A DNA stretch of 64,000 bases from sequence record NC_010811.2. One strand, 5' to 3'. The translations under genes and the position numbers were made by a program. The notes beneath the pieces were generated by a model. It was given only the letters and a program-made list of their open reading frames with translations, had not been told where the DNA came from and did not search any database. Shown one piece after another: positions 12,587 through 47,655 of this stretch (the stretch's first letter is position 1; every line of letters starts with the position of its first letter).

Positions 12587-14370
12587 TATTGGCCCCCAAG
12601 CAATCGGGTGGGATCCGCGTCAGTGATGGTCGGTTGCTGACGTTCGCTGTAGTAGGCGTTGACCGTGAGCGACGAAAGCGAGTTGTACCGGATCGGGAAT
12701 TCTCCGCTAGACGGCAGACCTCCTGACGGCGTGATGCTCCCGTTGTCCGTGAACGTGGTGCTGGTCGCAGGCACGTTCGCCAACAAACCCAAGCCTCCTG
12801 CCTGACGTCCCCACACTTGATACGAAGCGGCGCCCGCCACCGCAGGCCACGTCAGCGTGATCGCGTGGGTGTTGCCTGGATCAGTGATCTGCGGGAAGAT
12901 CCACTTCGTCGGATAACCGACGTCGCCGTTGGTGAGCGTAGTGCTTACCGCGTACGCATACACAAGCGGCCCCAACGTGCCCAGACTCGGAAGGATCGTG
13001 AACGTGGGCAGCGGGCTTTCGGGCGCTGTGACGATCATCGGACCAACCGGGCTGTTGACTCGAACGTACGACACTTGACCGGGACTGGCGTTGACCACCG
13101 TCTCGATCAGATCAGACGTGTAGAAGTTGGTCATCAGCAGGCCGGGGCGCGGCGCAAACAGATTTGTGAGCGCCGTAACGCTGTTCTGCTGAACCTGAGA
13201 GGGGATCGCCGAGTTGAACACGAATACATCCACGTTCACGTCCCGCGGAATTGCAATCGGGTCTTGCCACAGGAAGTATGCAGCATACATCGTCACCGAT
13301 TGGCAGTAATTGAGGAACGACTGGATCTGGTCCTGCGTCCACGGGCTGCTGGTAAGCGCCGACACGCGGATCACATTCATCCAGCGAACATCGCCTGGAT
13401 CAATCTCGCGCTGTGCCTGAGTCACAGCGTCCTTTACCCCTGGATACGTAGCGATCAACGCCTGATACTGCGACTTGGTGACCGCCGAGCTGTAGGTGCC
13501 GAAGCTGCCGGACGCCACGTTCTTGTAGGCGACGATCGACTTCTCGCTGCTGCCACCTGTCGGGTTTGAGGTAGCGACTCCGGTGATCGATGAGAAGCCG
13601 ACCACGGTCACTGCCTTGTTCAACGTGATGATCGAGTCGCCCGCCTGTCCCTGTGTGACCGGATAGCTGATGGTCACGATATCGTTGACCTGAGGGATCG
13701 TACCGAACTGGCCGCTGACCCCGCCCAAGTTGCCGAACACCGTGATCAGACGACCGTCCGACAGCGTGAGGTCGGCGAACGCAGGCAATCCGTCGTAGTT
13801 CCACAGCGTGCCGAACGACTTGGGAATGAACGTGCCGTTGACTTGCACCCAGACGTCCTGGTCCGAGATCACAAAGCTGTCCTGAGTCGAAACCCATGTC
13901 TGCCGTTCGGTGCCCAAACCTGCCATGCCATAGCTGTAGATCTGGCCTTCGTACAGCGTAACCGTGGTCGGGCTGTTTGCCGCCAGCGTCAGCTGCTGAC
14001 GGTTGAAGAAGTAGTTCCCAGCGCAGCTGAATTGAGTCAGCGGGGGAATGGAAACAACGCTGGAGCTGGTCAGCGTCACGGTCATCGCGCTCGGCAGCCA
14101 GCGTGTGATGCGCAGCCCCTGCATCTGCGCGATGGACAGGATGGCGTCATCGGACAGTGCAGTTTCCGCGTACGCATCCTCGTACGAACGACGGATACGA
14201 CCCTGCGCAAAAGTGCCGACGGCCGACGCGAAATCGACGAGCGTGCTGCTGGTCTGGGTAGGCAGCGTGCCCTTCCAGCTTTGACGAGTCTGCAGGTTGG
14301 ACTGGAACTGCGAGACGAACTGATCGAAGTCGACTGTGGCGTCGCTCAGGGTGAGTACGGTACTTGGCAT
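12586..14370 (-). CDS. Baseplate wedge subunit (T4 gp6 / baseplate J-like)
   Basis: 594 aa; DFDQFVSQF, AYAETA, SAVTKSQYQALI pattern; position after the gp25-like gene. Confidence 0.75.
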   Translation of the reverse strand: MPSTVLTLSDATVDFDQFVSQFQSNLQTRQSWKGTLPTQTSSTLVDFASAVGTFAQGRIRRSYEDAYAETALSDDAILSIAQMQGLRITRWLPSAMTVTLTSSSVVSIPPLTQFSCAGNYFFNRQQLTLAANSPTTVTLYEGQIYSYGMAGLGTERQTWVSTQDSFVISDQDVWVQVNGTFIPKSFGTLWNYDGLPAFADLTLSDGRLITVFGNLGGVSGQFGTIPQVNDIVTISYPVTQGQAGDSIITLNKAVTVVGFSSITGVATSNPTGGSSEKSIVAYKNVASGSFGTYSSAVTKSQYQALIATYPGVKDAVTQAQREIDPGDVRWMNVIRVSALTSSPWTQDQIQSFLNYCQSVTMYAAYFLWQDPIAIPRDVNVDVFVFNSAIPSQVQQNSVTALTNLFAPRPGLLMTNFYTSDLIETVVNASPGQVSYVRVNSPVGPMIVTAPESPLPTFTILPSLGTLGPLVYAYAVSTTLTNGDVGYPTKWIFPQITDPGNTHAITLTWPAVAGAASYQVWGRQAGGLGLLANVPATSTTFTDNGSITPSGGLPSSGEFPIRYNSLSSLTVNAYYSERQQPTITDADPTRLLGGQ

Positions 14371-33804: not shown

Positions 33805-35277
33805 TTACTCGTCATCATCGCCGAAATCGTCATCATCGTCTTCGTCGGCCGGACGCTTCTTCGAAGACTTCTTGGCGGCGGGTTTGGACTTGCCCTTCTT
33901 GGCCTTGGGCGCCTCCTCTTCCTCGTCTTCATCTTCGTCATCGTCGTCGCCGAAGTCGTCATCGTCGTCTTCGTCAACCGGCTTCTTGCTGGTCTTCTTG
34001 GCGGGCTTGGTCGTCTTCTTGGCCGGTGCCTTGCGCTTGGCCTTGGGCTCGTCGTCTTCGTCCTCGTCCTCGTCTTCGTCGTCGGCATCATCGTCGCCGT
34101 CTTCGTCGTCTTCGTCGTCAGACCAAGGCGCAGACTTGCCGCCCTTCTTGGCGGGCTTGCCCTTGCCCTTCTTGGGCTCGTCGTCTTCGTCGTCGAAGTC
34201 GTCGTCATCTTCGTCGTCCGAATCCGAGTCCTCATCGTCCTCGTCATCATCTTCCGAATCGTCGTCTTCGTCCTCGTCGTCCTCGTCGGCCTTGCGCTTG
34301 GACTTGGCGGGAGCCTTCTTGCCCTTCTTGGCGGGCGGCTCATCGTCTTCGTCCTCGTCGTCGCCGTCATCGTCGTCGAAGTCTTCATCCTCGTCTTCGT
34401 CGCGAGCCGGTTTCTTGGCGGCCTTGCCCTTCTTGGACTTCGGAGCTTCGTCCTCGTCTTCTTCCTCGAAGTCCTCGTCGCTGCGCTTCTTGCCGCCCTT
34501 CAGCTTGATGCCGTTGCGCTTGGCCCACGAGGCGAAGTCGGCCTTCACTTCTTCTTCGGTCTGCTCGCTGGCCAGTTCCGACAGATCCCACTTGAGGTAC
34601 GCCAGCTCTTCTTCAGTGAGCGGGGTTTGGCCGTTGGGACCCGGCTGGATGGTGTACTGGTTGGCGGGGGACTCGTCCGGATCGTGCATGATGCGGATGT
34701 CCATGCCGAACTTCGGGTGGCTGAGGCTGTACGACTTGGTGCCGCCCTTGCCGTCGACCGTGTTCAGGCCCTTCATCTTCTGGATCTTGGCCACCACACC
34801 TGCGGGCAGGCGCAGCGCCACGACCGGCGTCCACGTGTCGCTGTCCTTGTCCTTGTAGCCCGTCTTGCGTTCGCTGCTGGTGGGCTTGGACTTGCGTGCC
34901 GGCTCCTTCTTCTGCTCGCTGCGCATGATGGCGTTGATGTAGAAGTGAGTGGCCACTTGGATGTTGCGATCCTTCTGGTCCACGCCGCGTTCGGCTTGGT
35001 ACAGATCACGCCACGGGTCGTACTTCGTGCTGTCGAACTCTTGAGTGTCCGGAGAATACGACGGGCTGTTGACCGAGAAGTTGGTCGTGCCTTTGCCGTC
35101 TTTCTTCTTGGTCTTGACCCAGTACGTGCAGTAGCTGAACGTCGGGCCAAACAGGCGAAGCGTGACCCACTTCTTGGCGGGCAGCTTCATGATGTTGACC
35201 TTGTCCGACGGGCGAATACGCTCCGCACGGTTGTTGGTCTTGACCGAATCGAAATCGGCGCCTTGTTGCTTTGCCAT
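33805..35277 (-). CDS. Single-stranded DNA-binding protein (gp32-like) with very long acidic/Lys-rich disordered tail
   Basis: OB-like N-terminal domain (VTLRLFGP..HFYINAI..GMDIRIMHD..Y), acidic tail, adjacent to uvsX. Confidence 0.65.
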   Translation of the reverse strand: MAKQQGADFDSVKTNNRAERIRPSDKVNIMKLPAKKWVTLRLFGPTFSYCTYWVKTKKKDGKGTTNFSVNSPSYSPDTQEFDSTKYDPWRDLYQAERGVDQKDRNIQVATHFYINAIMRSEQKKEPARKSKPTSSERKTGYKDKDSDTWTPVVALRLPAGVVAKIQKMKGLNTVDGKGGTKSYSLSHPKFGMDIRIMHDPDESPANQYTIQPGPNGQTPLTEEELAYLKWDLSELASEQTEEEVKADFASWAKRNGIKLKGGKKRSDEDFEEEDEDEAPKSKKGKAAKKPARDEDEDEDFDDDDGDDEDEDDEPPAKKGKKAPAKSKRKADEDDEDEDDDSEDDDEDDEDSDSDDEDDDDFDDEDDEPKKGKGKPAKKGGKSAPWSDDEDDEDGDDDADDEDEDEDEDDEPKAKRKAPAKKTTKPAKKTSKKPVDEDDDDDFGDDDDEDEDEEEEAPKAKKGKSKPAAKKSSKKRPADEDDDDDFGDDDE

Positions 35278-35344
35278 CGGTATAATCTCCGAGTTGGTTG
35301 ATTGACGATGATGGTTTGTTATAGGCCAACGGCCCGGGACCCAC

Positions 35345-35352
35345 TATTTACT
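35345..35352 (-). promoter_or_regulatory. AGTAAATA motif upstream of ssb (candidate phage promoter)
   Basis: Part of a 15-mer (actatttactgcgga, + strand) repeated exactly at 47528. Confidence 0.55.
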
Positions 35353-35773
35353 GCGGACTGCTTTCTTGAGACACGCGCTGCGCAAATGCCTGAGCGGCAC
35401 GCTCCTTGTGTACTTGCGCATCCACGTCATGGATGGTGGTCAACGCACGAGTCAACCCTTGGACCACCTTGACGACAGTAGCTCGCACCTGCGCGTCGTC
35501 GTAGCTGAGGGCAGTGGTGAGAAGCGTTACCGTGTTCTGGATGAGGTTCTGCTGGTGTACGCTGCGCTCGCTGCTACGTTGGTCCATCTGCTCGATAAGC
35601 AGTTGGCTGATTGCAGCCCACGGCGCGTCGTTCTGCAGCATGTTGAACATCTGCTCAGCCTGTCGTGCGCGCAGCGCGTAGTCCGACATCTGGCTTTGAA
35701 GACTGGCAACAGACATGCGAAGGCTTGCCAGTTCCATATCTGGTGCTTGAACCGCTACTGAGGATTGATCCAT
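35348..35773 (-). CDS. Hypothetical coiled-coil protein
   Basis: 141 aa, adjacent to the sigma gene stop. Confidence 0.6.
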   Translation of the reverse strand: MDQSSVAVQAPDMELASLRMSVASLQSQMSDYALRARQAEQMFNMLQNDAPWAAISQLLIEQMDQRSSERSVHQQNLIQNTVTLLTTALSYDDAQVRATVVKVVQGLTRALTTIHDVDAQVHKERAAQAFAQRVSQESSPQ

Positions 35774-35774
35774 G

Positions 35775-36749
35775 TCAGTGATTCCAGGTGAAGCGCTTCA
35801 GCGTTTTGATTTGGTCATTAGTGACGAACTCGGGAATACCCAAGGTCGCACGCAGATACCCATGGACGTCTACCTGACGAGAGATGTACGCCACGTGTTG
35901 AATGAGTTCGCCTTCAAGGTTGGGCATGACGGTGCCCAACACATCGTCGATCGAGTCGCCATACTGTTCGTGCAGTGCCTCGATCGACGGATCCATCTGC
36001 GTACGCGCCAGCGCCGCCACTTCAGCACGCGCCGACTTGAACCAACTGAGGATGAAAGTGGTGAGCACGCCCTGTCGCGCATTGCAGCGATCGATGGCCT
36101 TAGACACGGTCATAAGATAGATCTGCACCACGTCGTCCAATCGCACGCTGTGCTTGATGTCGCGATACATGAGTCGTGCATGATTCAGCGCCAGTCGCGT
36201 GTACTTCTGGATGATCAGCTCTTTGAACCAACAAGCCTTATCAGTCCAGTGGCGGACTTGCTGAATGACCGCGTACAGGCTGGCGCCGGTACGCAACCCA
36301 AGCTGACGCTCAATCTGGTAGATACGAGACTGGCGAACGATTGGGTCCATGTCCGAGATTTTGTGCAGCGATTCGTATTCTTGTACCTGACTGAGAAACA
36401 GGGAGAGGAATCCGAACAGCAGGCCGCGATTAAGCGACATTGCACGTGCGTGCGTGTTGGCACGCTTTGGGACGGGGTCGGTCACGAGATTGAAGAGGTG
36501 CACAGGCAGTCGCTGCCGGTCATCCGAGGTGAATTTTGTGCTGGCCTTCAGCGTCTGCGCACCGACTACTTGCGCCACATAGTTGTGGAACAGGTGCGGC
36601 AGCTCCGCATGAATAGGATCCAGCGCAGACCACAGGAACAGGTCAAGGGTCTGGAGATACTGCAGACTGGTCAGATTGTCGACGATCTTCTCTTCGGTGG
36701 CCTTCAATTTCTCGAAAGCAACAGAATGTGTGTAACCGGAGGCTGCCAT
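35775..36749 (-). CDS. Phage-encoded sigma70-family RNA polymerase sigma factor
   Basis: Region 2-like KYTRLAL..DDVVQIYLMTVSKAIDRCNARQGVLTTFILSWF; region 3-like PSIEAL. Confidence 0.65.
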   Translation of the reverse strand: MAASGYTHSVAFEKLKATEEKIVDNLTSLQYLQTLDLFLWSALDPIHAELPHLFHNYVAQVVGAQTLKASTKFTSDDRQRLPVHLFNLVTDPVPKRANTHARAMSLNRGLLFGFLSLFLSQVQEYESLHKISDMDPIVRQSRIYQIERQLGLRTGASLYAVIQQVRHWTDKACWFKELIIQKYTRLALNHARLMYRDIKHSVRLDDVVQIYLMTVSKAIDRCNARQGVLTTFILSWFKSARAEVAALARTQMDPSIEALHEQYGDSIDDVLGTVMPNLEGELIQHVAYISRQVDVHGYLRATLGIPEFVTNDQIKTLKRFTWNH

Positions 36750-37843: not shown

Positions 37844-38374
37844 CTAATGTGCGTTGGGGTTATGCTGCGTGTGGTACGCAACGATTCCATTGGACCGCCA
37901 CATCTCGACGACATCCAAGGTGTCGTCAAACGCCATGAAGATTTGCTTCGGGTCTAGCCCCAGCCGCATAACGCGATCCCACTTGTATTCGCGGTCAGGC
38001 ACACGATTGGGCTCTATGTAGTCCTTCGTGCGCATCAGCAACTGATGGTCGTGGATGTCGGCGCCCACCCACTGACGCAACTGGTCCAGCGTTTGCTGAC
38101 GATATCGCTTGTCGTCACGGCGCGACGTGATGAACAGCAGGTGGAACTGCGGATCGAAGTAGAAGGCACGGTACACGAAGACGCCCTGCGGAATGGGCAG
38201 GTCTTCGTGCACCCGGCTGAAGTACTTATCGTACTCGCCGCTGAAGTAATACTTGGCACGGCTGCTCGAGTCAACGAGGCAGCCGTCGATGTCGCAGATC
38301 ACATACTTCTTGTCACTGAACACCGGAATCTCCAGTTGATCAGCGAACTCGATGCTTGAGGTAAGGAAAGACAT
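37844..38374 (-). CDS. HAD-family phosphatase (polynucleotide kinase-phosphatase C-terminal-like)
   Basis: Motif I CDIDGCL, motif II ITSR, motif IV AFDD. Confidence 0.8.
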   Translation of the reverse strand: MSFLTSSIEFADQLEIPVFSDKKYVICDIDGCLVDSSSRAKYYFSGEYDKYFSRVHEDLPIPQGVFVYRAFYFDPQFHLLFITSRRDDKRYRQQTLDQLRQWVGADIHDHQLLMRTKDYIEPNRVPDREYKWDRVMRLGLDPKQIFMAFDDTLDVVEMWRSNGIVAYHTQHNPNAH

Positions 38375-38401: not shown

Positions 38402-39100
38402 TCAGTCTTGGCCCATGCCCATTTGCACGGCCTTCATGCGCAGCTCCAGGAGCTTGGCGATCTCTGCGCGCTTGGCCGCACGCTTTTCCAGCAGCAAGGC
38501 GAAGTAGAAGATGGCGTCGCGCAGCGTTTCGTCCAGGCTCTCTGTGGAGTCCGGGTCTTCGTCCACGTTGAACACGTCGTACTTGCGCAGCTCGCACTGA
38601 GCTTCGAGCCGGTCGATCTTGCGCCAGATGGTGAAGAACGCGCCCGGTCCCAGACGGCGGCACCAGCTTGCGCCATACTCGCTGTCCTTCTTGATGCCAA
38701 CGGCCACCAACTGATCAAAGATTTCGCGGATGGACTCGAAGTTCGTGTGCGGGATATCGCGGTCGTTGAAGTTGAGCGACGCGATAGCCACACGACGAGA
38801 TTCGTCCTTCACCATGGCAAGCACTTCGGACGCAGGCATGATGTAGGGCTTGTCGGACGGCGCTTCCATCTTTCCGAGGACTTCACGCGCCGACGGGCTG
38901 GCCGCATTCAGCTCTTTGATCGTAGGCTGCGGATTGATGTTGAACGTGCCGTGCGCGCAATCGGCGGTGGGCGTCTTGGTGACCGGGTTGTCCGTCCAAC
39001 CGGGCGTGTACGGGGTGGTGTCTTTCTTGTCCATAAGCGTTGGGCTCGTCTCGTTGGGTTTGTGGCCGTTGGGCGTTAGGAAGTACGCGTCGTGGTCCAT
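38402..39100 (-). CDS. Nucleotide-modification-associated (DUF1599/Nmad1-like) all-alpha NTP pyrophosphatase-fold protein
   Basis: KKDSEYGASW..RKIDRL..ESLDETLRDAIFY motif; directly downstream of the hydroxymethylase. Confidence 0.65.
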   Translation of the reverse strand: MDHDAYFLTPNGHKPNETSPTLMDKKDTTPYTPGWTDNPVTKTPTADCAHGTFNINPQPTIKELNAASPSAREVLGKMEAPSDKPYIMPASEVLAMVKDESRRVAIASLNFNDRDIPHTNFESIREIFDQLVAVGIKKDSEYGASWCRRLGPGAFFTIWRKIDRLEAQCELRKYDVFNVDEDPDSTESLDETLRDAIFYFALLLEKRAAKRAEIAKLLELRMKAVQMGMGQD

Positions 39101-39103
39101 GGC

Positions 39104-40222
39104 TTAGAGAACTTGCGGAGGAACCGGCAGCTTGGCCTTCTCCGCCAGCTTTGCAGCACGACGATACAGCCAGTTCTTGCCAGCGAACAGCCAGTCGTTG
39201 CTGGTGTCGATCTCGTGGATGAACTCGTTGTCTTCGGTAGTCAGCACTTCCAGCGCTTCGTCGATCTTGCCTTCCTTGTACAGGTTGTAGGCATGGGCCA
39301 TGGGCGCAGCCACATAGCGGATGAACGGCACCTGATAGTGCTCCAGCGCCACTTGGCGATAGTTGTCCACCAGATGCGCGACTTCTTCGTCGAAGAGCGG
39401 ATCGTCCGACCCCATTTCCATCGGCGCTGCATTGCGCGACGCATACACGTCCGGTCCCTTGCGCAGCACAGGTTGCACACCATACGTGGTGTCCACGATG
39501 AAGCGCTTGGTGATGTCGAACTCCAGATACACGTGCAGATTGTTCGACACTTGGTAGTAGTGGCCGAGTGGCAGGCCACATTTCTCGGCGACGTATTCGT
39601 GCAGCATCGAGAAGTGCACGACGTTGGCGCCGTAGCAGCCCCAGATCATGTCGTTGCTGCGGTTGGTGACCGTCATGTTGAGCTTGCCCAACTGCGCGTC
39701 GAACATCACGCTCGTGTTGCACGGCAGGTCCTTCGACCCTTGGTTCAGCAGGTCGGATTCGCGCCGCACTGCCCACGAGTCCTCGCGGCTATAGAATTCT
39801 CGGCTAGCGTCCCACATCTGCAGAACGCAGCGGCGGCTTGCCGGGTTCTTCTTCAGCTCGTCGATGATGGCGTTCAGCTGATCGTAGCCGAAGTGCTGGC
39901 GCCAGCGGAAGCCGTAGGCACCATTCAGCGTGCTGCCGTCATCGGTGTATTCCAGCATCTGCTTGGCGTAGTACGACGCGAACTCCACGTCGTTGCGCCC
40001 GGCCAGCATCCACAAGGCTTCCATCAGGTGCAGGAACGGATTGGCATCACGCACTGCGTCGAACGACACGCGCTGGCGCGGATGCGTGTACACCGAAGTG
40101 ACCGGCGTTGGGAAGCGAATGACCGGACCGTTGCGGCTGTCCGTCTTCAGGCCAACGGTGCAGATGGTTTCCAGACCCGAGTACAGGCCCTGATCGGGAT
40201 TGACGACGTGTAGGACTTTCAT
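39104..40222 (-). CDS. Thymidylate-synthase-family dUMP hydroxymethylase
   Basis: SRNG, RDANPF, AYG.RWR, NPASRR, catalytic DLPCN, NRSNDMIWGCYGANVVHFS, SNNLHVY; Asn at the substrate-specificity position; start at ATG 40222. Confidence 0.8.
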   Translation of the reverse strand: MKVLHVVNPDQGLYSGLETICTVGLKTDSRNGPVIRFPTPVTSVYTHPRQRVSFDAVRDANPFLHLMEALWMLAGRNDVEFASYYAKQMLEYTDDGSTLNGAYGFRWRQHFGYDQLNAIIDELKKNPASRRCVLQMWDASREFYSREDSWAVRRESDLLNQGSKDLPCNTSVMFDAQLGKLNMTVTNRSNDMIWGCYGANVVHFSMLHEYVAEKCGLPLGHYYQVSNNLHVYLEFDITKRFIVDTTYGVQPVLRKGPDVYASRNAAPMEMGSDDPLFDEEVAHLVDNYRQVALEHYQVPFIRYVAAPMAHAYNLYKEGKIDEALEVLTTEDNEFIHEIDTSNDWLFAGKNWLYRRAAKLAEKAKLPVPPQVL

Positions 40223-40257
40223 GGTTTGGGTTGTTTGGTTGCGTTGTACACTAGGCT

Positions 40258-40265
40258 TATTTACT
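40258..40265 (-). promoter_or_regulatory. AGTAAATA motif upstream of the dUMP hydroxymethylase
   Basis: 35 nt upstream of the ATG, in a short intergenic gap. Confidence 0.5.
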
Positions 40266-41274
40266 AGCCGCCGTTGTAACGATTCTTCATCCGGCTGGTG
40301 TCGCCATCCAGAATAGACCGCACCATCTTGCTCGTCTCGCAATGGCAATTGCTGTAGTTGGGCATGGAAATGGTGGCAAAGCCGGTCCACGGGTCTTCAG
40401 TCCAATACTTAGCGGGCACTTTGGCCTTGACCGCAGCGTTCACCAGATCACGCGTGCGGATCATCGGCTCATTCAACTTGTCGCCCTTGTACACCGCCTG
40501 CATGTGGCCATTCAGCAGCCAGTTCATGCCCTTGGTGGTGCCGGGACCAGGACTGGTGAACGTGTTGAGGTCAGGGGCGCGGCCCAACCACTTCTTGCTG
40601 TAGGACAGATCGACCAGCACTTGATTGGACATGAACGCGCCCCAGCCATGGAACGACGTGAGCGCCGCCAGACTGTCCACCATCGTAGTTTTGAAGACGT
40701 GTCGCACTTCCTTGCGTCGTTCCCAAAGCGGAGCCAGCCCAACAAATGGGATGTACTCGGCCTTCGAGCCTTCGCGCTTCGGATAGCGTGGCGGGAACAC
40801 CGAGTTGACGATGTATGCGCCGGTGATCAGCTTGTTGCCAGCTTCCTTGTAGCGAACGAGCGACTGGTAGACACGTTCTGTGTTCCAGGTTTTCACAGGC
40901 CACACGCCGTCGTCCATCAGCCGCTGCAGCGTTGGAGGCCAGTTGATGAGACGTGCCGCGCACAGCATGAACCACAGATCCGGATGGTCTTCGTACGGCT
41001 TGACGATATTGTCCACGATCCACGTGGTGCCGGGGTCCAGCTCACGATAGATGTTGGTGAACTTGGAAGCGCGCAGTACCGGGTCCGTGGTCCATGGCTT
41101 GGGCAAACCCTTCTGCCGCTTCAGGAAGATCTTGTGGCGCTCGATGATGAAGTCGGCCATGGCGTCCACGCGCTCTTCTTCCGTGCGAAGAACGCGCGGA
41201 TCGAACAAGAACTTGGCAGGCGCCTCTTCCGCCGACGCAAACAACTGCCCTTGACGCGCATCACGCTTTGCCAT
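40264..41274 (-). CDS. 5-hmdU DNA kinase family protein (aGPT-Pplase clade 1 helical domain)
   Basis: FIIERHKIF..WTTDPVL..KFTNIYRELDPGT, RLINW and SPGPGTTKG motifs; adjacent to the hydroxymethylase; start at ATG 41274. Confidence 0.75.
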   Translation of the reverse strand: MAKRDARQGQLFASAEEAPAKFLFDPRVLRTEEERVDAMADFIIERHKIFLKRQKGLPKPWTTDPVLRASKFTNIYRELDPGTTWIVDNIVKPYEDHPDLWFMLCAARLINWPPTLQRLMDDGVWPVKTWNTERVYQSLVRYKEAGNKLITGAYIVNSVFPPRYPKREGSKAEYIPFVGLAPLWERRKEVRHVFKTTMVDSLAALTSFHGWGAFMSNQVLVDLSYSKKWLGRAPDLNTFTSPGPGTTKGMNWLLNGHMQAVYKGDKLNEPMIRTRDLVNAAVKAKVPAKYWTEDPWTGFATISMPNYSNCHCETSKMVRSILDGDTSRMKNRYNGG

Positions 41275-42088
41275 TCTGCTTCTCCAGTTGACGTTCAGCG
41301 GCCTCGGCACGATGGCGCCAGTACATGCACTGCTGACCGAGAGTGAAATTCCGCGGGTCCAGTTCCGCATTGTAGTGCGACAGTCCGGCGGCGCCAATGG
41401 CCATCGCATCTACGATATCTGCGTGCACGGTAAGTGCGGGCAGCACGCCTTCCATCTTGTAGCCGAACAGGTGGAAGTCGCGTTGGTAGATGTGATTCAC
41501 AAGCTGAAGCGTGTTGCGCGACAGATCGTCCATCGTAAGGCGGCGCCCGGTGTCGTACTTGGTCTGGTCCTTCGAGTGGCCCAGCCCTTCGAGCGAAGCA
41601 TCAAGGCCCAGTCGCTGACGAACATACGCCCAATCCGCCGCCAGATTCTCGTAGCGGCCGATGTAGGACGCGAACAGCTCGTTGTTCTTGTAGAAGAAGT
41701 AGTGCTGCGGACAGAAGTGGGTGTAGCGCCAGTCGAAACGCACGTTGGACGGGGTGAGATTGCGCGCAGCCCACTCGTTGAAGTCGGTGTCCGGGTCCAG
41801 CGCATGCTGGCGCTTGTGCTCGGCCCAAGCGCTGAACAGACGGTCGTAGGGGTTGCGCACAAACCCGAACTTGAAGAAGTTGCGGAACGTACGCTCAGGC
41901 CACACCGCCGGAATGTCGCCAACGCACACGTGGAACAGTTCAACCACACGCTCCAGCGCAGGCACGTATTCCTGATACGCGAGGCGATGGGGGTTGTCGT
42001 CGTATGCGAACAGCTGACGACGAATGCTGGTCCCTGCGACCTTCGGGTTGTGCAGGAACATGAAGCCGCGTTGGTTATTGATAATCAT
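41261..42088 (-). CDS. PAPS-dependent sulfotransferase (Sulfotransfer_2 type)
   Basis: 5'-PSB motif HNPKVAGTS, 3'-PB motif FVRNPYDRLFSAW, HFCPQ, IGRYENLAADW. Confidence 0.85.
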   Translation of the reverse strand: MIINNQRGFMFLHNPKVAGTSIRRQLFAYDDNPHRLAYQEYVPALERVVELFHVCVGDIPAVWPERTFRNFFKFGFVRNPYDRLFSAWAEHKRQHALDPDTDFNEWAARNLTPSNVRFDWRYTHFCPQHYFFYKNNELFASYIGRYENLAADWAYVRQRLGLDASLEGLGHSKDQTKYDTGRRLTMDDLSRNTLQLVNHIYQRDFHLFGYKMEGVLPALTVHADIVDAMAIGAAGLSHYNAELDPRNFTLGQQCMYWRHRAEAAERQLEKQNGKA

Positions 42089-42983
42089 TGAGCAGGTCTC
42101 GGAGGTATTGTTTGTCACGACCTTGGAACGCGAGCTCTGCGGTCAGCAGCTTGCGGCCCTTGGCCTTGAACAGTTCGTAACGGGGAGCGTCAAGGAACAG
42201 GCTGGGCGCGCTCATAAAGTCCACGCGCAGGAACGATGCGACGTGCTGCGCCTGCTTGCCTCGACGGATGAGTCCAGGGAACATCACCATCTGGCGCAGG
42301 AACGAATCCCACACCTGCTTTACTTTACGTTCGCGCCCGGCACCCGACTTGTCGGCAGGGTCGAACGTGGTGTTCCACAGCAGACCGTAGTCCACGACCG
42401 ACGTATGGCCATTGCAAAGCACTGCCAGATTGTGGACGGTGTCAATGCCCCACAGGTCACGCGTAGCGCCGCGGTCAATCACATTGAGCAGCACATCTAC
42501 GTCGTAGCCTGCAACGTTCGTGCACTTGTGATTGATGCGCTGGGCACCCCATCGCGCCATCACGTTCTTGTGCATGAAGTAGGGACCGGCGCCCACTAGC
42601 GAATTGCCAGCCGCGAACAGACGGGGCGCAGTCTTGAGGAACCAGCGATCAGCAGCCGTGCGGTCCTTGGTGGCACCAACGAACGACCCATCTTTCTGGC
42701 GACCGTAGAACAGCAGGTCGTCCTCAATCACCATCGCCCAGCGTCCGCCCTGCTTCTGATGATGTGCGTACACACCATATCGCTTGTTGGGCAGCAGCGT
42801 GTCGTTTGGCGTGGGAAGGAAGTCCACGTGCTTGGCGTAGGGCTGACGCTTGTGTTCACGCAGCTCGTCCTTCGGACACACAACAGTCACGTGCTGCAGG
42901 ACAGCGGGCGATAGGTAGGACAGCGTCTTCTGCCGTCCCAGTCGCCCCTTGGTCAGCAGGTAGATGTGATATCGCTTATCCAT
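42075..42983 (-). CDS. GT-A fold glycosyltransferase (TET-associated/GREB1-like), copy 1
   Basis: IYLLTKGR, VVCPKDE, VIEDDL (DxD-like motif). Confidence 0.65.
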   Translation of the reverse strand: MDKRYHIYLLTKGRLGRQKTLSYLSPAVLQHVTVVCPKDELREHKRQPYAKHVDFLPTPNDTLLPNKRYGVYAHHQKQGGRWAMVIEDDLLFYGRQKDGSFVGATKDRTAADRWFLKTAPRLFAAGNSLVGAGPYFMHKNVMARWGAQRINHKCTNVAGYDVDVLLNVIDRGATRDLWGIDTVHNLAVLCNGHTSVVDYGLLWNTTFDPADKSGAGRERKVKQVWDSFLRQMVMFPGLIRRGKQAQHVASFLRVDFMSAPSLFLDAPRYELFKAKGRKLLTAELAFQGRDKQYLRDLLNDYQ

Positions 42984-43750
42984 TACACGAGTCCGCCGAT
43001 CTTAGCGGCGCCCCTCCAGCTAATCCGAGTGTTGGAATCCGGATGTTGGGCTGAAGGCGGCTTCTCCTTGACTACATCCGGGTGTAGCTTGATCAGCTTC
43101 TGCAGCGCCTTCGCCGCCATCTCGCGAGTGCGTTCACCTTGCAAGCCTCCAGCGGCGTCTGCCTTACGCTGGCCGACAGCCATGTCGTAGGTCACTGCTA
43201 TGCGAACACCGGCCTTCAGCAGTTGAAGCGTGTAGTCCACATCCTCGTAGGGGAAGATGCGATTCCACTTGATGGTCTTAACCGCCTTCTTGTCCATACC
43301 GAAGACGAAGCCCAGATGGAAATTCTCCTTGATACCGCCTTTGGGTGCGAACGCCTTGGTGCCGAAACCAACGCAGCGATAGTCACAGCACAGCTTGGGC
43401 AGCGTCTTGGTCCAGAAGCGGTAGGTGGCGTCGCGTGCGGTGCTGGCCACGACATGCTTCTGCTGTTCTGGGTCGAACGCATACAGATACAGGTCGTCGT
43501 CCATCATGAAGGTGAAGCGATGCGGCGACTGCAGCATGATCCACTCGCGCTTGGCGCCCAACGTCTTGATGTTGTTGGGCTGTGCCAGCACGTTGACTCG
43601 CGGATAGTTCTTGCGCAGGGCTTTCACCTCGTCCGCGGGACACACTAGGGTCACGTGCTGATGCATGCCCTTTGGCAACCGCTCCACCGTCAACTGATTG
43701 TCGACCCGGCCGCGTGTTGGTATGTACAGATGATAGTCGATCTTAGACAT
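42983..43750 (-). CDS. GT-A fold glycosyltransferase (TET-associated/GREB1-like), copy 2
   Basis: LYIPTRGR, LGAKREWI, MMDDDL, YEDVDYTLQLL, GGLQ motifs. Confidence 0.75.
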   Translation of the reverse strand: MSKIDYHLYIPTRGRVDNQLTVERLPKGMHQHVTLVCPADEVKALRKNYPRVNVLAQPNNIKTLGAKREWIMLQSPHRFTFMMDDDLYLYAFDPEQQKHVVASTARDATYRFWTKTLPKLCCDYRCVGFGTKAFAPKGGIKENFHLGFVFGMDKKAVKTIKWNRIFPYEDVDYTLQLLKAGVRIAVTYDMAVGQRKADAAGGLQGERTREMAAKALQKLIKLHPDVVKEKPPSAQHPDSNTRISWRGAAKIGGLV

Positions 43751-44465
43751 GATCGGTCTTCAGATAGGCTTCCAGTTCTTCGGGAGTGCCAAGGCAATGG
43801 AACGAGTCACGCGGCACCGGCACATTCAGCACAAGATTGTTGGTCACAATCAAGTGGTTGAGCAAGTCGCTCATGTAGATTTCTTTGGCGATCGACTTGC
43901 GAAGCAGATGGCTTGCGGCCTCTGCCGCCGCGTATCCAGAAGAGAACCAGTAGACGCCGCATCCGCTGTACGTGGGAGTCGGTGCCGTGATGGTCCGTTC
44001 GTGGATATGCGTGACGAAGTAGCCATCGGTGTGCACTGCGCTGAAGTGGCGTGCAGGCTCTTCGTTCAGGAACGTGAGCATTGCGGCGGTGGCCTTGGAT
44101 TCAGCCGCAGGACGCAGGTACGCCAGAAGATCGATCTTGGCAAACGAATCACAGTCCAAGAACAGGACGGGCGCTGCCAGATCAATAGTCGGCATCTTCA
44201 CCAGAGCGTGCAACGCCGAATGCGCAGGGCCGCGCAGCGTTTGGCACGTGCTGAGGAAGCGCAGGCCGGAAGTTCCACGCGGCAGATGACGAACAGCTTC
44301 ACCGCTGAAGATGAAGTTCACGTCCTCGGTCTTCAGTCCGTATTCGGCCAGCACATGCTCGTACATTGGGACGCCGTGTACCGGGATCATTGGCTTGGCT
44401 TGACGGTAGCCAGCAGCCGTGAAGCGGGAACCAAGTCCCGCAGCCAACATGATGATTTGGGTCAT
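43743..44465 (-). CDS. Sugar-phosphate nucleotidyltransferase (BcbG-like)
   Basis: MLAAGLGSRF..KPMI, LRGPAHS, LDCD, GVYWFSSG, LGTPEEL; start at ATG 44465. Confidence 0.8.
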   Translation of the reverse strand: MTQIIMLAAGLGSRFTAAGYRQAKPMIPVHGVPMYEHVLAEYGLKTEDVNFIFSGEAVRHLPRGTSGLRFLSTCQTLRGPAHSALHALVKMPTIDLAAPVLFLDCDSFAKIDLLAYLRPAAESKATAAMLTFLNEEPARHFSAVHTDGYFVTHIHERTITAPTPTYSGCGVYWFSSGYAAAEAASHLLRKSIAKEIYMSDLLNHLIVTNNLVLNVPVPRDSFHCLGTPEELEAYLKTDHV

Positions 44466-44467
44466 TT

Positions 44468-45901
44468 CTATTGGATCTGGTTCAGAACTTTGCGGGCCAG
44501 TTCGACGAATCGCAACTGGCGCTGTTTGTCGTCGCTGTGGAGCGGAAGCATGCTGATGAACAACAGTCCCGTCACCGCCCACAACTCGTTGGACGAAATG
44601 CCGAAGCGCTGAGCGCCGTAACGCAAGATGGGGTCTGCCAAACCCTCCCATTCAGTGGGCAGTGGCTGCTTTGCGACTGCGTGGTCGTAGCCGATCACGG
44701 AGTGCAGAAGCTTTGCCAGCTCATAGCGAACGTCGCCATACAGCGAGGGGCGGTCCTTAGCGTCCAGCCCCCGTGGATCGAACACCAAGACACGATCCGT
44801 ACGCTGGTCCAACATGATGTTGGAGAAGCACAGGTCACCATGCATGATGGTTCGATGGTGTACCTTTGGATTCACGTTCATCGCGAACAACTGAGCCATG
44901 CCATGAAGGTCGGCCAACGGCAGATGTACGTTGCCCTCCTCTAACAGATCCAGGCGGCCCCACGTCTTCGTGACCGCAAGCTGATAGAAGTCGTTGACAT
45001 GCGCCCCCTGACACGCTTGATGCGCGTCTTCCACCCAGCACAGCGTCTGATGAAGAACGTGGGTCCACGCACGGTCGTCCAACTTGCCATACACATAGAG
45101 CTCAGCCAGCGTTGGCAGCGGCAGATACTCCATGGTGTACTCGCCGTCGTCATAGTGGACGATGCGCGGCACGTAGGTGGACAGCTTGCGTGGCAAACCC
45201 AGGAACCACTCGCGCTCTGCGTTCACCTTCTTCGTGTTGGCGCTGCGCTTGGTCAGCAGGTGGCCATCGTTGGTCAACCCGTTGAAGTGACGAGTGGTGC
45301 GGGACAGGAACTCGCGCTTGGAACTGAAGTACGTAGACAGATGCCCAAAGTCCAGCCAGTGCTCGTCGATCGAAACGTTGGGAAGGCATCCCGCCATGTG
45401 ACGCACAGCCGATTTCACCGTCTCGTAACTGTCGAGCGTGAACGTCAGCTCACTCAGGCGACACGCAAAGTACCCGGCGAACACGCTGTCCTTGTCCAGG
45501 AACTGCCAGTGGGCAGACGTACCCAAGGGATGAGAAACTACGCCCACCGACGGTTCTTTCAACCACTTGGTGACCAGCGTATCGCCCCACAGAACATGCA
45601 CACAGACGTCCGGCGCGTTCTCTTGAGCACCGATCAGGCGCAGCGCGCGACGCAACTGATAGGGCAGCGACTGATCTTCCGCCGACGGGAAGAAGTAGAC
45701 GTTGCCTCCCACGTATGGAACAGACGACATCTCGGGCCACGTCACGTAGATGTGGTGGAAGTTGTCGCCTGCTGCGTCCAACTGCAGGTCGAGCAGCGTG
45801 CGCCCGCCCACCGGCACACGGGCTGCAGGAATGGCCCCGAACAGGAACTGAAGCTCCTGATTGCATGGAGCCGATGACATGATGAGCAGGACGTTGCGCA
45901 T
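44468..45901 (-). CDS. Nucleotidyltransferase-like / sugar kinase (APH/choline-kinase fold) fusion, BcbE-like
   Basis: N-terminal LLIMSS..ELQFLFGAIP, WLDFGHLSTY; kinase motifs HGDLCFSN, FDPRG and GDVRYELAKL. Confidence 0.75.
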   Translation of the reverse strand: MRNVLLIMSSAPCNQELQFLFGAIPAARVPVGGRTLLDLQLDAAGDNFHHIYVTWPEMSSVPYVGGNVYFFPSAEDQSLPYQLRRALRLIGAQENAPDVCVHVLWGDTLVTKWLKEPSVGVVSHPLGTSAHWQFLDKDSVFAGYFACRLSELTFTLDSYETVKSAVRHMAGCLPNVSIDEHWLDFGHLSTYFSSKREFLSRTTRHFNGLTNDGHLLTKRSANTKKVNAEREWFLGLPRKLSTYVPRIVHYDDGEYTMEYLPLPTLAELYVYGKLDDRAWTHVLHQTLCWVEDAHQACQGAHVNDFYQLAVTKTWGRLDLLEEGNVHLPLADLHGMAQLFAMNVNPKVHHRTIMHGDLCFSNIMLDQRTDRVLVFDPRGLDAKDRPSLYGDVRYELAKLLHSVIGYDHAVAKQPLPTEWEGLADPILRYGAQRFGISSNELWAVTGLLFISMLPLHSDDKQRQLRFVELARKVLNQIQ

Positions 45902-46801
45902 TTACTTTGCCTTCTTCTGTTTCTGACTACTGGCGAATGCCTTCTCCCAGTAGACGATCACTTCCTTGCGGTTGATGGACCCCTTGTACTCCTTGTCCAC
46001 CACCTTGACGAACGGGTCGTGGATGGACGCCAGCTTGACCGCGGCACGGTCTGATCCCTTTACCGTACGCTCTTCGCTACAGCCGCCGTCCGAGCCGTAG
46101 TCGAGTGGATTCACAACGAAGTTGGTGAGGATCAGATTGGGGTAGCCCAGTCGCAGCAGGTGCAGCGTCACGTTGAAGTCCTCGCGGAATTTCACTTCGT
46201 CGAATCGGATGCCGTGCTTGAGCAGTGTGCGCCGATTGTGGCCGATTGCGTGCATGGCGCGTCCCACCATCTTGAAGTCGCCGCGCACATAGTTGTTCAT
46301 CAGGCGGCTGGCGATGCACGTGTGGACTACGCCCTTGTTCACCATCTGATCCTTGATGAAGTCCCAGCGACGCATCTTCTGCACGTCAGGGAACGGCTCC
46401 TTGAACAGGAAGGTGATGCCCTTGGCCTTTGCCGCGTCCGTCTGCACCCACTTGCCGCTCTTGGCACCCTGCCATTCGCGGTGCTCTTTGTTGCAGCGGC
46501 GGAAGAAGTACATGTCGTCGTCCAACTGGAAGACGTTGTCGGCGCGAACGTTCTCGATGATCCACTGGCGCTTCTTTGCGATACAGTCGACCGTGGGATC
46601 GTCCACCGCCCACACCAGCTCGTGCTTGTGCTTCTTGCGCAGGGCCTTCGCTTCATCCCAATCGCTGGCCAGCAACAGCGTTCGCTCGCGCAGTTCGGCA
46701 GGCAGCTCACGCAGCGTAACCTGACGATCGACGCGCCGATGCGTTGGGATAACCACTTGGAAGTCTTTGTCCGCCACCGGCGGGCGTCGATGTTGTGCCA
46801 T
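45902..46801 (-). CDS. GT-A fold glycosyltransferase (TET-associated/GREB1-like), copy 3
   Basis: VVIPTHRR, IAKKRQWI, QLDDDM, FREDFNVTLHLL, GGCS; start at ATG 46801. Confidence 0.75.
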   Translation of the reverse strand: MAQHRRPPVADKDFQVVIPTHRRVDRQVTLRELPAELRERTLLLASDWDEAKALRKKHKHELVWAVDDPTVDCIAKKRQWIIENVRADNVFQLDDDMYFFRRCNKEHREWQGAKSGKWVQTDAAKAKGITFLFKEPFPDVQKMRRWDFIKDQMVNKGVVHTCIASRLMNNYVRGDFKMVGRAMHAIGHNRRTLLKHGIRFDEVKFREDFNVTLHLLRLGYPNLILTNFVVNPLDYGSDGGCSEERTVKGSDRAAVKLASIHDPFVKVVDKEYKGSINRKEVIVYWEKAFASSQKQKKAK

Positions 46802-46802
46802 G

Positions 46803-47498
46803 TCAGTAGGTGAGTGTGAAGATGGAACGACCGTCGGCATCGGTAGTGAACGCCGAGTAGCCACGGACCAAAACGTTAAACTTGGTCACGTTATGCTCGA
46901 TGGTGGTGCCCGGCGTCATGTGCCCGCGCAGATCGAAGTGATCGACCAGCACTTCGTTCATGGTGCCAGCTTCGATGATACGCCACATATTGGTCAGGCC
47001 ATCGCTGTGCGTGTTGTAGCGGATGTAGTACGACTGATGGCCAGCCGTCACCTGATTGACGATGTCCTGCGCCACACGCTCGAAGTCTTCGGGCGTTTGC
47101 AGATATTCGTCCACCGAGTACTGGAAGGCACCAACACCCGGCTTCTGGTAGAGCTTGTTGGTGTCCGCGAATCGGCCTTCCTGGATGGTGTTCATCCACA
47201 CACTGAACACGTCGCTCACTTCCTTGAACTGGGTGAAGAATGCGCCGCGTGTTGTGCGCGTCGGACACACGAAGTCCACGATCACCCACGAGCCCTGCTC
47301 CATGACACAGCGTGCCAGTCGGCCCAGCGTCTTGGCCTGGATCACACGATCCTTCTCTTCGAACGACAAATGCGTCGTGATGTTGGCGCGCGCCCAGTCC
47401 GCGTTGAAGTGAATGGCGCTCAGACGCTTCTGAATGGCGAGGGCCAGCGTGGTCTTGCCACTGCCGGGCAAGCCTTGAATCATGATGGTCTTGGACAT
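46803..47498 (-). CDS. Adenylylsulfate (APS) kinase-like P-loop kinase with extra C-terminal domain
   Basis: IQGLPGSGKTTLA, FNADWAR, DR..Q, VDFVCP, RFADTNKLYQKP resemble CysC-like kinases; true substrate not established. Confidence 0.6.
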   Translation of the reverse strand: MSKTIMIQGLPGSGKTTLALAIQKRLSAIHFNADWARANITTHLSFEEKDRVIQAKTLGRLARCVMEQGSWVIVDFVCPTRTTRGAFFTQFKEVSDVFSVWMNTIQEGRFADTNKLYQKPGVGAFQYSVDEYLQTPEDFERVAQDIVNQVTAGHQSYYIRYNTHSDGLTNMWRIIEAGTMNEVLVDHFDLRGHMTPGTTIEHNVTKFNVLVRGYSAFTTDADGRSIFTLTY

Positions 47499-47529: not shown

Positions 47530-47537
47530 TATTTACT
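47530..47537 (-). promoter_or_regulatory. AGTAAATA motif upstream of the modification operon
   Basis: 31 nt upstream of the kinase ATG; 15-mer identical to the copy at 35343. Confidence 0.55.
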
Positions 47538-47655
47538 GCGGAGTTATGAAGGCGAGGACAGCGAGTGCGATAAAAATGAAGACGCACGTCCAGCGTGGAA
47601 ACACACGCGCCGCGAAGATGGAAGCACTCAGGCTGTAGTAGTCGTGACGATTCAT
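47533..47655 (-). CDS. 40-aa membrane peptide (not in the ORF track)
   Basis: MNRHDYYSLSASIFAARVFPRWTCVFIFIALAVLAFITPQ*; ATGA overlap with the upstream gene. Confidence 0.45.
   Translation of the reverse strand: MNRHDYYSLSASIFAARVFPRWTCVFIFIALAVLAFITPQ

Follow-up and report, generated by a model that had tools for sequence, protein, structure and literature searches.

The 64,000-nucleotide stretch analysed here (the window) belongs, at 100% identity, to the Ralstonia jumbo phage phiRSL1 (AB366653.2 / NC_010811.2; hereafter RSL1), and it raises the question of why a phage should carry, among genes for DNA modification, both a sulfotransferase gene and a gene resembling those of adenosine 5'-phosphosulfate (APS) kinases. 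All positions are window coordinates, to which 124000 is added to obtain record coordinates. The two genes under study, open reading frame (ORF) 232 and ORF238, delimit the finding on the minus strand. Both belong to an 11-gene cassette, ORF228-238, which lies on that strand inside the DNA-replication block and is read in the order ORF238, 237, 236, 235, 234, 233, 232, 231, 230, 229, 228. They are already named in GenBank as 'sulfotransferase-like protein' (ORF232) and 'adenosine 5'-phosphosulfate kinase' (ORF238), and the bare presence of two intact genes was therefore real but not new. An original prediction from the letters of the window had proposed that the pair makes and uses 3'-phosphoadenosine-5'-phosphosulfate (PAPS) to sulfate a DNA-linked glycan, and this interpretation was partly supported. 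According to the reading reached here, ORF232 and ORF238 may be the user and the supplier of PAPS in a thymidine-hypermodification cassette and would sulfate a glycan carried by hydroxymethyl-uracil (hmU) in the phage DNA. A probability of roughly one half was assigned to this reading.

The sulfotransferase was evaluated first by its motifs and its family. ORF232 (41261..42088, minus strand) was confirmed as a predicted Sulfotransfer_2 enzyme with both PAPS-binding motifs. The reading frame 41261-42118(-) holds FLHNPKVAGTS and FVRNPYDRLFSAW, which cover the motifs HNPKVAGTS and RNPYDRLFSAW on which the prediction of an intact sulfotransferase had been based. The match to Pfam Sulfotransfer_2 had an expectation value (E) of 3.9e-21 and 76.8 bits (cut-off 22), with residues 11-221 aligned to positions 3-252 of the 252-position profile; phrog_3347 matched at E 1.9e-70, and the protein was of full length when judged against 32 homologs. 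In the resulting set of 33 sequences, K26, A28 and G29 of the 5'-phosphosulfate loop H23-N-P-K26-V-A-G-T-S were invariant and T30 was nearly so. In the 3'-phosphate motif R88-N-P90-Y-D-R-L-F-S96, R88 and P90 were invariant and S96 was nearly invariant, as was H134, the candidate catalytic histidine. All 33 homologs share a start of the form MII, so that the ATG at 42088 (MIINNQ...) is favoured over the GenBank start GTG 42118. With this start, ORF232 overlaps ORF233 by 14 nucleotides. The stop codon of ORF232 occupies 41263-41261, and the ATG of ORF231 at 41274-41272, which stands behind a GGAG sequence, gives a second 14-nucleotide overlap. The overlap between the sulfotransferase stop and the start of the 5-hydroxymethyl-deoxyuridine (5-hmdU) DNA kinase gene was approximately as predicted; its extent is 14 nucleotides with ATG 41274 or 50 nucleotides with the GenBank start GTG 41310. 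Judged by the homologs and the ribosome-binding sites, both GenBank starts look too far upstream.

The AlphaFold2 model of ORF232 had a mean confidence (pLDDT) of 89.7. The Foldseek matches of this model in the PDB were weak (best E 0.02, TM-score at most 0.35), and the top 25 were all sulfotransferases, mostly heparan-sulfate enzymes. Predicted viral sulfotransferases from cyanophages, roseophage SIO1 and giant viruses matched the model better, with E values from 2e-8 to 4e-4. When a profile of the 33 homologs was compared with the PDB sequences, nothing reached E <= 1, and a tblastn search of 50,697 cultured phage records with ORF232 matched RSL1 alone. The nearest named cellular homolog, with 40% identity, was from Pantoea ananatis (P0015), where it closes an O-antigen-type glycosyltransferase cluster that adjoins gnd. 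This position favours a carbohydrate acceptor for ORF232. The phage protein shares with the Sulfotransfer_2 carbohydrate sulfotransferases and with P0015 both PAPS motifs, the catalytic lysine, the arginine/serine pair and the association with glycosyltransferases, whereas it differs in its phage DNA-modification cassette, in a C-terminal helical extension (residues ~225-285) and in having no solved close relative.

The kinase ORF238 (46803..47498, minus strand) has two domains, an N-terminal APS-kinase-like domain of ~145 residues and a C-terminal all-beta domain of ~80 residues. Its match to Pfam APS_kinase had E 2.7e-15 and 57.1 bits (cut-off 21.1). In a phmmer search of the PDB, all 22 matches at E < 0.05 were APS kinases, with the significant ones running from 7e-9 (2yvu) to ~1e-4; no other kinase family was significant in this search. 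The predicted P-loop kinase with APS-kinase-like motifs was thereby upheld at the level of family and fold. The AlphaFold2 model had a pLDDT of 92.8, and its N-terminal domain superposed in Foldseek on the APS-bound APS kinases 3uie, 4fxp, 1m7g and 2ofw. The top 50 PDB matches included 45 APS kinases, with E values from 4e-8 to 2e-6 and TM-scores of ~0.5-0.56 on the query, and they covered the N-terminal domain only. The P-loop GLPGSGKTT (residues 9-17) was invariant in 28 orthologs. In APS kinases, the DGD(N)xR motif after strand 2 provides a Mg2+ ligand, the catalytic aspartate and a phosphosulfate-binding arginine. The corresponding DGDNxR position of ORF238 was N32-A33-D34-W-A-R37, with the first aspartate replaced by asparagine in the RSL1 clade. 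In LSFEEKDR, the LxF element corresponds to L-S-F46 and the DR element to D50-R51. Residues D34, R37, F46 and R51 were invariant in the 28 orthologs and likewise in distant phage relatives. In the segment LSFEEKDRVIQAK, F46, D50 and R51 were kept, Q54 replaced the asparagine and the RR pair was gone, and the ISP loop appeared as V77-C78-P79.

ORF238 shares with the APS kinases (CysC; EC 2.7.1.25; for example A. thaliana APK1 3uie, P. chrysogenum 1m7g and M. tuberculosis 4rfv) the P-loop kinase fold (they are also its best matches in sequence and structure), the aspartate and arginine after strand 2, the phenylalanine and DR of the APS-binding helix, and the proline of ISP. It differs from them by an identity of only ~20%, VCP for ISP, an altered KGLY lid and the extra C-terminal domain. 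On this basis, ORF238 is best called a predicted APS-kinase-like protein. The C-terminal beta domain found no relative by a profile of 19 members against the PDB or Pfam. The same domain (46803-47054, residues ~150-231) also stands as a separate small ORF directly after 250-residue kinases in unrelated viral contigs (L036:9844-10206, L037:3910-4218, L050:3271-3606 and L087:734-1072).

Whether the two genes belong together was explored in relatives reached through the sulfotransferase. This set comprised RSL1 and eight metagenomic loci (L006, L007, L009, L011, L093, L094, L099 and L100) with 35-66% identity. The kinase gene lay within 10 kb of the sulfotransferase gene in all nine loci, and 5-HMUDK (the 5-hmdU DNA kinase) and TAGT (TET-associated glycosyltransferase) genes were present in eight of them, L009 being the exception. 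The 178-kb IMG/VR contig L006 (66% identity) carries a kinase, HAD_PNKP, TAGT, an ORF236-like gene, TAGT, two sulfotransferases, TAGT, an epimerase/dehydratase, 5-HMUDK and a hydroxymethylase. L011 and L099 (60-62% identity) have an RSL1-like cassette with a DUF4326 gene inserted before 5-HMUDK. In L007 (41% identity), the order was TAGT, ORF236-like, NTP-transferase, TAGT, sulfotransferase, kinase, CysD, CysN-like G domain, 5-HMUDK and hydroxymethylase. The cassettes of L093, L094 and L100 (35-42% identity) comprise the kinase, a UDP-galactopyranose mutase, the sulfotransferase, a GT1-like gene, TAGT, 5-HMUDK, hydroxymethylase and HAD_PNKP. L009 (37% identity) has an NTP-transferase, the sulfotransferase, a GT4 gene and the kinase, adjoins gyrase/topoisomerase genes and has no hmU genes. 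A further locus reached through the kinase, L096, also contained a sulfotransferase, in a galactofuranose-type cassette. The sulfotransferase gene was located between TAGT genes and 5-HMUDK in RSL1, L006, L007, L011, L093, L094, L096, L099 and L100, and the cassette of the relatives always follows DNA polymerase A and primase genes, as in RSL1. The sugar-supply genes differ by locus (APH-kinase and NTP-transferase, epimerase/dehydratase, or UDP-galactopyranose mutase), as in polysaccharide loci.

The CysD protein of L007 matched NF003587 with 237 bits (cut-off 195), and this cassette holds what appears from its gene families to be a complete sulfate-activation set. L007 is also the locus in which the kinase shares the genomic company of APS kinases, with CysD/CysN and a PAPS user beside it. 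Homologs of the kinase were present in 17 cultured-phage records, none of them from the 5-HMUDK phages of the M6/YuA-like, ViI-like, PhiW-14 and SP10 types (PMC5889632 Table 1). This absence indicates that the kinase is not a general enzyme of the hmU pathway and tracks the sulfotransferase rather than hmU synthesis. The pairing of PAPS supply and use in a hypermodification and glycosylation cassette, as originally predicted, was therefore supported by synteny across about ten divergent phage loci, by the CysD/CysN genes of L007 and by the kinase-free 5-HMUDK phages, and not by the operon argument first offered for it. In L007, the CysD gene and a 176-residue CysN-like GTPase reduced to its G domain occupy 11524-12881, and a 348-residue ORF with weak similarity to GIY-YIG/group I intron endonucleases (L007:13880-14926) lies between 5-HMUDK and the hydroxymethylase gene.

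The remaining genes of the cassette, all on the minus strand, were rated as an hmU-based glycosylating DNA hypermodification pathway, to which the sulfation genes would add a branch. ORF230 (39104..40348) is a dUMP hydroxymethyltransferase of the thymidylate-synthase superfamily (Pfam Thymidylat_synt E 5.1e-22; phrog_5131 E 1.6e-139), and its nucleotide sequence is 72-74% identical to the genes for dU hydroxymethyltransferase in M6/YuA-like Pseudomonas phages, whose DNA carries an hmU-derived hypermodified thymidine (PMC5889632). ORF231 (40264..41274, with the revised start ATG 41274 behind its GGAG ribosome-binding site) is a 5-HMUDK (Pfam HMUDK_hel E 3.3e-39; phrog_2396 E 1.1e-80). Three genes are of the TAGT type: ORF234 (42983..43750) is a canonical TAGT DNA glycosyltransferase (Pfam TAGT E 3.5e-55, 187.5 bits, 1-205/205), ORF237 (45902..46840) is a divergent one (Pfam TAGT E 9.9e-12, 45.7 bits, cut-off 27.5; phrog_842 E 1.6e-63), and ORF233 (42075..42983) is a third, divergent TAGT-like protein (E 8.7e-6, 26.2 bits, cut-off 27.5; phrog_842 E 6.2e-44). 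ORF235 (43743..44465) is a sugar-1-phosphate nucleotidyltransferase, or NDP-sugar pyrophosphorylase (Pfam NTP_transf_3 E 6.9e-11, NTP_transferase E 1.9e-7), with NCBIfam matches to GlmU, AglF, RmlA and MurU types that were all below cut-off and a PDB match to 4evw at E 3e-4. ORF236 (44468..45901, 477 residues) combines an extra N-terminal domain with a C-terminal phosphotransferase domain of the APH/choline-kinase fold (Pfam APH E 5.8e-5, 23.4 bits, cut-off 23.2, residues 224-400; phrog_24015 E 1.8e-228). Its PDB matches were only marginal, and its orthologs keep their position in L006, L007, L011 and L099. ORF236 is likely an anomeric sugar (or alcohol) kinase feeding ORF235.

The following sequence of reactions can be proposed from these assignments. 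ORF230 would produce 5-hydroxymethyl-dUMP, which would enter the phage DNA as a partial substitute for thymidine. ORF236 as the kinase and ORF235 as the nucleotidyltransferase would provide an activated sugar, and ORF234, ORF237 and ORF233 would extend the hydroxymethyl group with a short glycan. ORF238 would phosphorylate APS made by the host at its 3'-OH to give PAPS, and ORF232 would pass the sulfate of PAPS on to a hydroxyl group of a sugar in the glycan on the DNA. The end product would be bulky bases with negative charge. That these bases shield the DNA against restriction or CRISPR nucleases, as was originally suggested, is a conjecture.

Such a pathway would combine parts of systems that are already known. 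The adjacent genes for a dUMP hydroxymethyltransferase and a 5-hmdU DNA kinase are shared with the 5-HMUDK-dependent hypermodification of PhiW-14, SP10, ViI and M6 (Lee et al. 2018, PMC5889632). The RSL1 cassette differs from these in having no aGPT-Pplase, PLP (pyridoxal-phosphate) or radical-SAM enzyme, and it has instead three TAGT genes, sugar-activation genes, a sulfotransferase and the APS-kinase-like gene. Glycosyltransferases of the TAGT/phrog_842 type, several per cassette, are shared with T-even glucosyl-hydroxymethylcytosine, with the metavirome TET/TAGT pathways (bioRxiv 10.1101/2023.12.21.572611) and with kinetoplastid base J. In RSL1, by contrast, the hmU precursor would be synthesised as a nucleotide and the cassette includes a 5-hmdU DNA kinase; for those systems, the papers found report no sulfation genes and never mention a sulfotransferase. 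The work on viral DNA glycosylation describes accessory epimerases, secondary glycosyltransferases and APH phosphotransferases and does not mention sulfotransferases (bioRxiv 10.1101/2023.12.21.572611). The literature search found no link of sulfotransferases, sulfation or cysC to phage DNA hypermodification; an earlier mention of the RSL1 neighbourhood is possible in the 2013 work of Iyer et al., in which the TAGT family was reportedly defined and the hmU kinase predicted.

Several observations weigh against a PAPS pair acting on DNA. The score of ORF238 against the NCBIfam apsK equivalog TIGR00455 was 52.6 bits, below the cut-off of 138.7, and the protein also fell under the cut-offs of all NCBIfam CysC subfamily models. 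NAD takes the place of DGD, and the ISP and KGLY motifs have diverged. The PHROG labels of its families are 'thymidylate kinase' and 'kinase', with a full-length match to phrog_761 'thymidylate kinase' at E 1.3e-19; phrog_505 'polynucleotide kinase' matched at E 1e-5. Kinases of the same clade in L097 and L098, with 48-52% identity, identical motifs and the same C-terminal domain, are encoded in 7-deazaguanine cassettes that contain no Sulfotransfer_2, 5-HMUDK or TAGT gene. Near-identical kinases of the wider 250-residue class occur with and without a nearby sulfotransferase (L034 vs L038 in the tree), and the same mix can be cited for siphophages of Xylella, Xanthomonas and Stenotrophomonas. 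For ORF232, the PDB profile search was empty and the Foldseek values were weak (E >= 0.02), so that no solved structure is close to it. Furthermore, no published chemistry of RSL1 DNA was found in the literature search.

The kinase observations would suit an enzyme that is not an APS kinase and that serves base-modification pathways generally, directed at a hydroxyl or at a modified nucleotide or nucleoside such as 5-hmdUMP or a deazaguanine nucleotide, or forming a split polynucleotide kinase-phosphatase with HAD_PNKP; in that case PAPS for the sulfotransferase would come from the host. The kinase and HAD_PNKP do occur together in both kinds of cassette, and in the 7-deazaguanine kind the kinase stands close to a phosphoribosyltransferase. 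The order in L097 and L098 (L097:9551-16680, L098:9549-14418) was QueD, kinase, a 288/312-residue protein, phosphoribosyltransferase, QueC, a 480-residue protein, QueE, FolE and HAD_PNKP. Gluconate and sugar kinases, which belong to the same superfamily, scored equally with APS kinases against the ORF238 model and were among its best structural matches. In addition, the majority of the kinase loci had no sulfotransferase in their flanks: 469 relatives of the kinase N-terminal domain were detected in IMG/VR, and in 80 loci chosen on this domain alone a Sulfotransfer_2 ORF was located within 10 kb of the kinase in 12. These 12 loci were at the same time counted in favour of the pairing of kinase and sulfotransferase. 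On one 146-kb IMG/VR contig, the 10 kb downstream of the kinase homolog contain four to five Sulfotransfer_2 ORFs (L075:11858-19780).

Other results speak for an APS kinase. No thymidylate-kinase or polynucleotide-kinase Pfam model reached E 0.01 on ORF238, as against 2.7e-15 for APS_kinase, and the PDB sequence matches were APS kinases only. The kinase was absent from all cultured 5-HMUDK phages without a sulfotransferase, and no phage locus anchored on the sulfotransferase lacked it, not even L009, which has no hmU genes; in L007 it stands between the sulfotransferase and CysD/CysN. As to the pairing of the two genes, RSL1 was, on the kinase-domain tree, in a 10-member clade of which eight members have a sulfotransferase, and the sulfotransferase label was clustered, with 13 changes compared with 18.3 in shuffles (none of 500 shuffles as low). 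An aspartate after strand 2 of P-loop kinases is typical of enzymes that phosphorylate hydroxyls and not of nucleoside monophosphate kinases, and the invariant D34 would fit the former. The 7-deazaguanine cassettes can be read in two ways: either the kinase has a broader role in base modification, or these cassettes hold a PAPS user of an unrecognised kind. The family of the 288-residue protein numbers 26 representatives among 1.84 billion proteins. Its N-terminal RTGSKS loop is invariant and resembles the phosphosulfate loop of sulfotransferases, and one of 23 members had a weak Sulfotransfer_4 match; hhalign against Sulfotransfer_2 gave a probability below 1%, and no PDB match was found. As a hint only, this family may be an unrecognised sulfotransferase. 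Overall, a kinase with a substrate other than APS was considered unlikely. The two narrower roles, a 5-hmdUMP (deoxynucleoside monophosphate) kinase and a polynucleotide-kinase-like partner of HAD_PNKP, were ranked low, the first because ORF238 homologs are absent from other 5-HMUDK phages and track the sulfotransferase, and the second because polynucleotide-kinase structures and families do not score on ORF238 while APS kinases do. Among the kinase relatives, Xylella phage Salvo gp32 (L002:5001-5747) and its counterpart in Stenotrophomonas phage DLP_6 (L004:4995-5726) are fused to a nucleotidyltransferase-like C-terminal domain with an HxGH...ISATxIR signature. This layout recalls PAPS synthase and has no sulfotransferase nearby, and some relatives are annotated beside COG3236/GTP cyclohydrolase II.

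If the PAPS pair is accepted, the acceptor of the sulfate has to be considered. The original proposal of a DNA-linked glycan was supported by context alone, that is, by the TAGT and 5-HMUDK flanks and the replication block, and the nearest cellular homolog lies in an O-antigen cluster. Instead of DNA, the sulfate could be received by a sugar in free or nucleotide-activated form, by a polysaccharide of the host envelope or by a glycoprotein of the virion; alternatively, the kinase could simply be a 'cysC' auxiliary metabolic gene with which the phage raises sulfur assimilation in its host. Besides the O-antigen neighbourhood, the sulfotransferases of cyanophages, roseophage SIO1 and giant viruses, for which no DNA role is known, would agree with such an acceptor, as would the sulfotransferase-bearing kinase loci of the IMG/VR sample (12/80), which have no 5-HMUDK or TAGT gene. 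Freshwater-phage cysC genes have been described as sulfate-assimilation auxiliary metabolic genes (Chen and Banfield 2024, PMC10914622). These are of the same annotation kind, phage APS-kinase genes that are commoner in large phage genomes. They were read there as aids to host sulfate assimilation, with no link to sulfotransferases or DNA modification, whereas the RSL1 kinase is tied to a sulfotransferase in a DNA-modification cassette. The location of the sulfotransferase argues against these acceptors: in nine divergent loci it is embedded between TAGT and 5-HMUDK genes, in the replication block and away from structural and lysis genes, and the stop/start overlaps with both neighbours suggest that it is translated together with DNA-modifying enzymes. 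Moreover, an NDP-sugar sulfated before transfer would still reach DNA.

The host gives a further indication. The sulfate-reduction operon of R. solanacearum GMI1000 is described as cysI-RSc2424-cysH-cysD-cysN, and cysC is not listed (PMC8995062). This fits a host that makes APS yet seems not to make PAPS for assimilation, although the missing cysC, which comes from the operon description in one paper and not from a genome search, is a weak point of the proposal. Where the host reduces APS directly, an APS kinase would be useless for assimilation. A host of this kind, with no need for PAPS, would account for the APS kinase in a phage whose sulfotransferase depends on PAPS, and the same logic would explain why L007 additionally brings CysD/CysN. 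On balance, an acceptor other than DNA, or a purely assimilatory kinase, was judged improbable.

The sulfation of a DNA-bound glycan leaves one gene of the cassette to be accounted for. A glycosylating pathway whose glycosyltransferases use the hydroxymethyl group itself as their target has no evident place for 5-HMUDK; moreover, no Pfam match to the DNA-glycosylase-like (aGPT-Pplase) transferase was found among ORF228-238, ORF240-243, 248 and 249. Both points count against the proposed pathway, and the otherwise unexplained company of 5-HMUDK and glycosyltransferases, together with the overlap of the sulfotransferase and 5-HMUDK genes, could be accommodated if ORF232 acted on the 5-hydroxymethyl group of hmU in DNA. 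The resulting 5-sulfooxymethyl-uracil would be the final anionic base or would carry a leaving group parallel to the phosphate added by 5-HMUDK. Sulfate esters of benzylic-type alcohols are good leaving groups in general chemistry. Nevertheless, the relatives and structural matches of ORF232 are carbohydrate sulfotransferases, its genes are constantly accompanied by glycosyltransferase and sugar-nucleotide genes whose kind varies by locus, and an ester of this kind would lack chemical stability in packaged DNA. Direct sulfation of hmU was thus regarded as very improbable, and a sugar hydroxyl on the glycan remained the preferred acceptor.

Hypermodification is one of the main ways in which phage DNA evades nucleases, those of restriction and CRISPR systems included, and it also supplies enzymes for use in DNA chemistry. 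To our knowledge, the known decorations of phage DNA are amines, amino acids and neutral sugars, and sulfated sugars have never been described on nucleic acids. In a wider form, the proposal would be that RSL1 and a set of uncultured relatives have, at part of their thymine positions, hmU bearing O-sulfated sugars, as the first sulfated modification of a nucleic acid, with a glycan type that varies like O-antigens (hexose salvage, epimerase or galactofuranose). Many phage 'cysC' genes would then feed PAPS to phage sulfotransferases, possibly including the unrecognised family in the 7-deazaguanine cassettes. This wider form is tentative, and we would place it somewhat short of even odds. A sulfate ester on a glycan bound to DNA would add a new chemical class to DNA, strongly anionic and glycosaminoglycan-like, with a bearing on packaging, on recognition by nucleases and polymerases and on sequencing, and it would imply that a PAPS-dependent enzyme can have DNA as its target. 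It would also alter the reading of the 'cysC' genes of phages in metagenomes, which are now counted as drivers of sulfur cycling. RSL1 is a cultured phage, and the idea is directly testable.

The transcription context was examined for the claim that the kinase is the first gene of an operon, which was not supported. The cassette lies just downstream of the genes for DNA polymerase I (ORF256) and primase (ORF253), and ORF238 is within a co-directional run that extends without a break at least from ORF275, via ORF256 and ORF253, to ORF222. The gap between ORF239 and ORF238 was 34 nucleotides. Promoter-like sites in the region occurred at chance level (6 compared with 5.7 +/- 2.2 in shuffled sequence), and with nothing above chance in the promoter and terminator scans the operon boundaries were not definable. 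ORF239 (47533-47655), directly upstream of the kinase gene, encodes a hydrophobic peptide of 40 codons, and a weak terminator-like hairpin is situated within it on the minus strand (47608-47582).

At the distal end of the cassette, ORF229 (38402..39100, minus strand) is a gene of conserved position with no Pfam or PHROG match, and ORF228 (37844..38374, minus strand) is a HAD phosphatase of the PNKP-phosphatase type (Pfam HAD_PNKP E 8.6e-12). ORF228 could be a 3'-phosphatase for PAP (3'-phosphoadenosine 5'-phosphate), a dTMP/dUMP nucleotidase or an end-healing enzyme. A gene of this type is at the distal cassette end in RSL1, L007, L093, L094, L096 and L100 and adjoins the kinase in L006, and the phosphatase is kept in most relatives, the 7-deazaguanine cassettes included. 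A small DUF4326 gene, seen in cassettes of the relatives between the sulfotransferase/glycosyltransferase genes and 5-HMUDK (L099:6414-6719, L011:8244-8552, L093:12667-12975 and L094:12495-12827), was not seen among the RSL1 cassette proteins. In the window interval 34001-36000, the AT skew falls to -0.33, well under the adjacent 2-kb bins.

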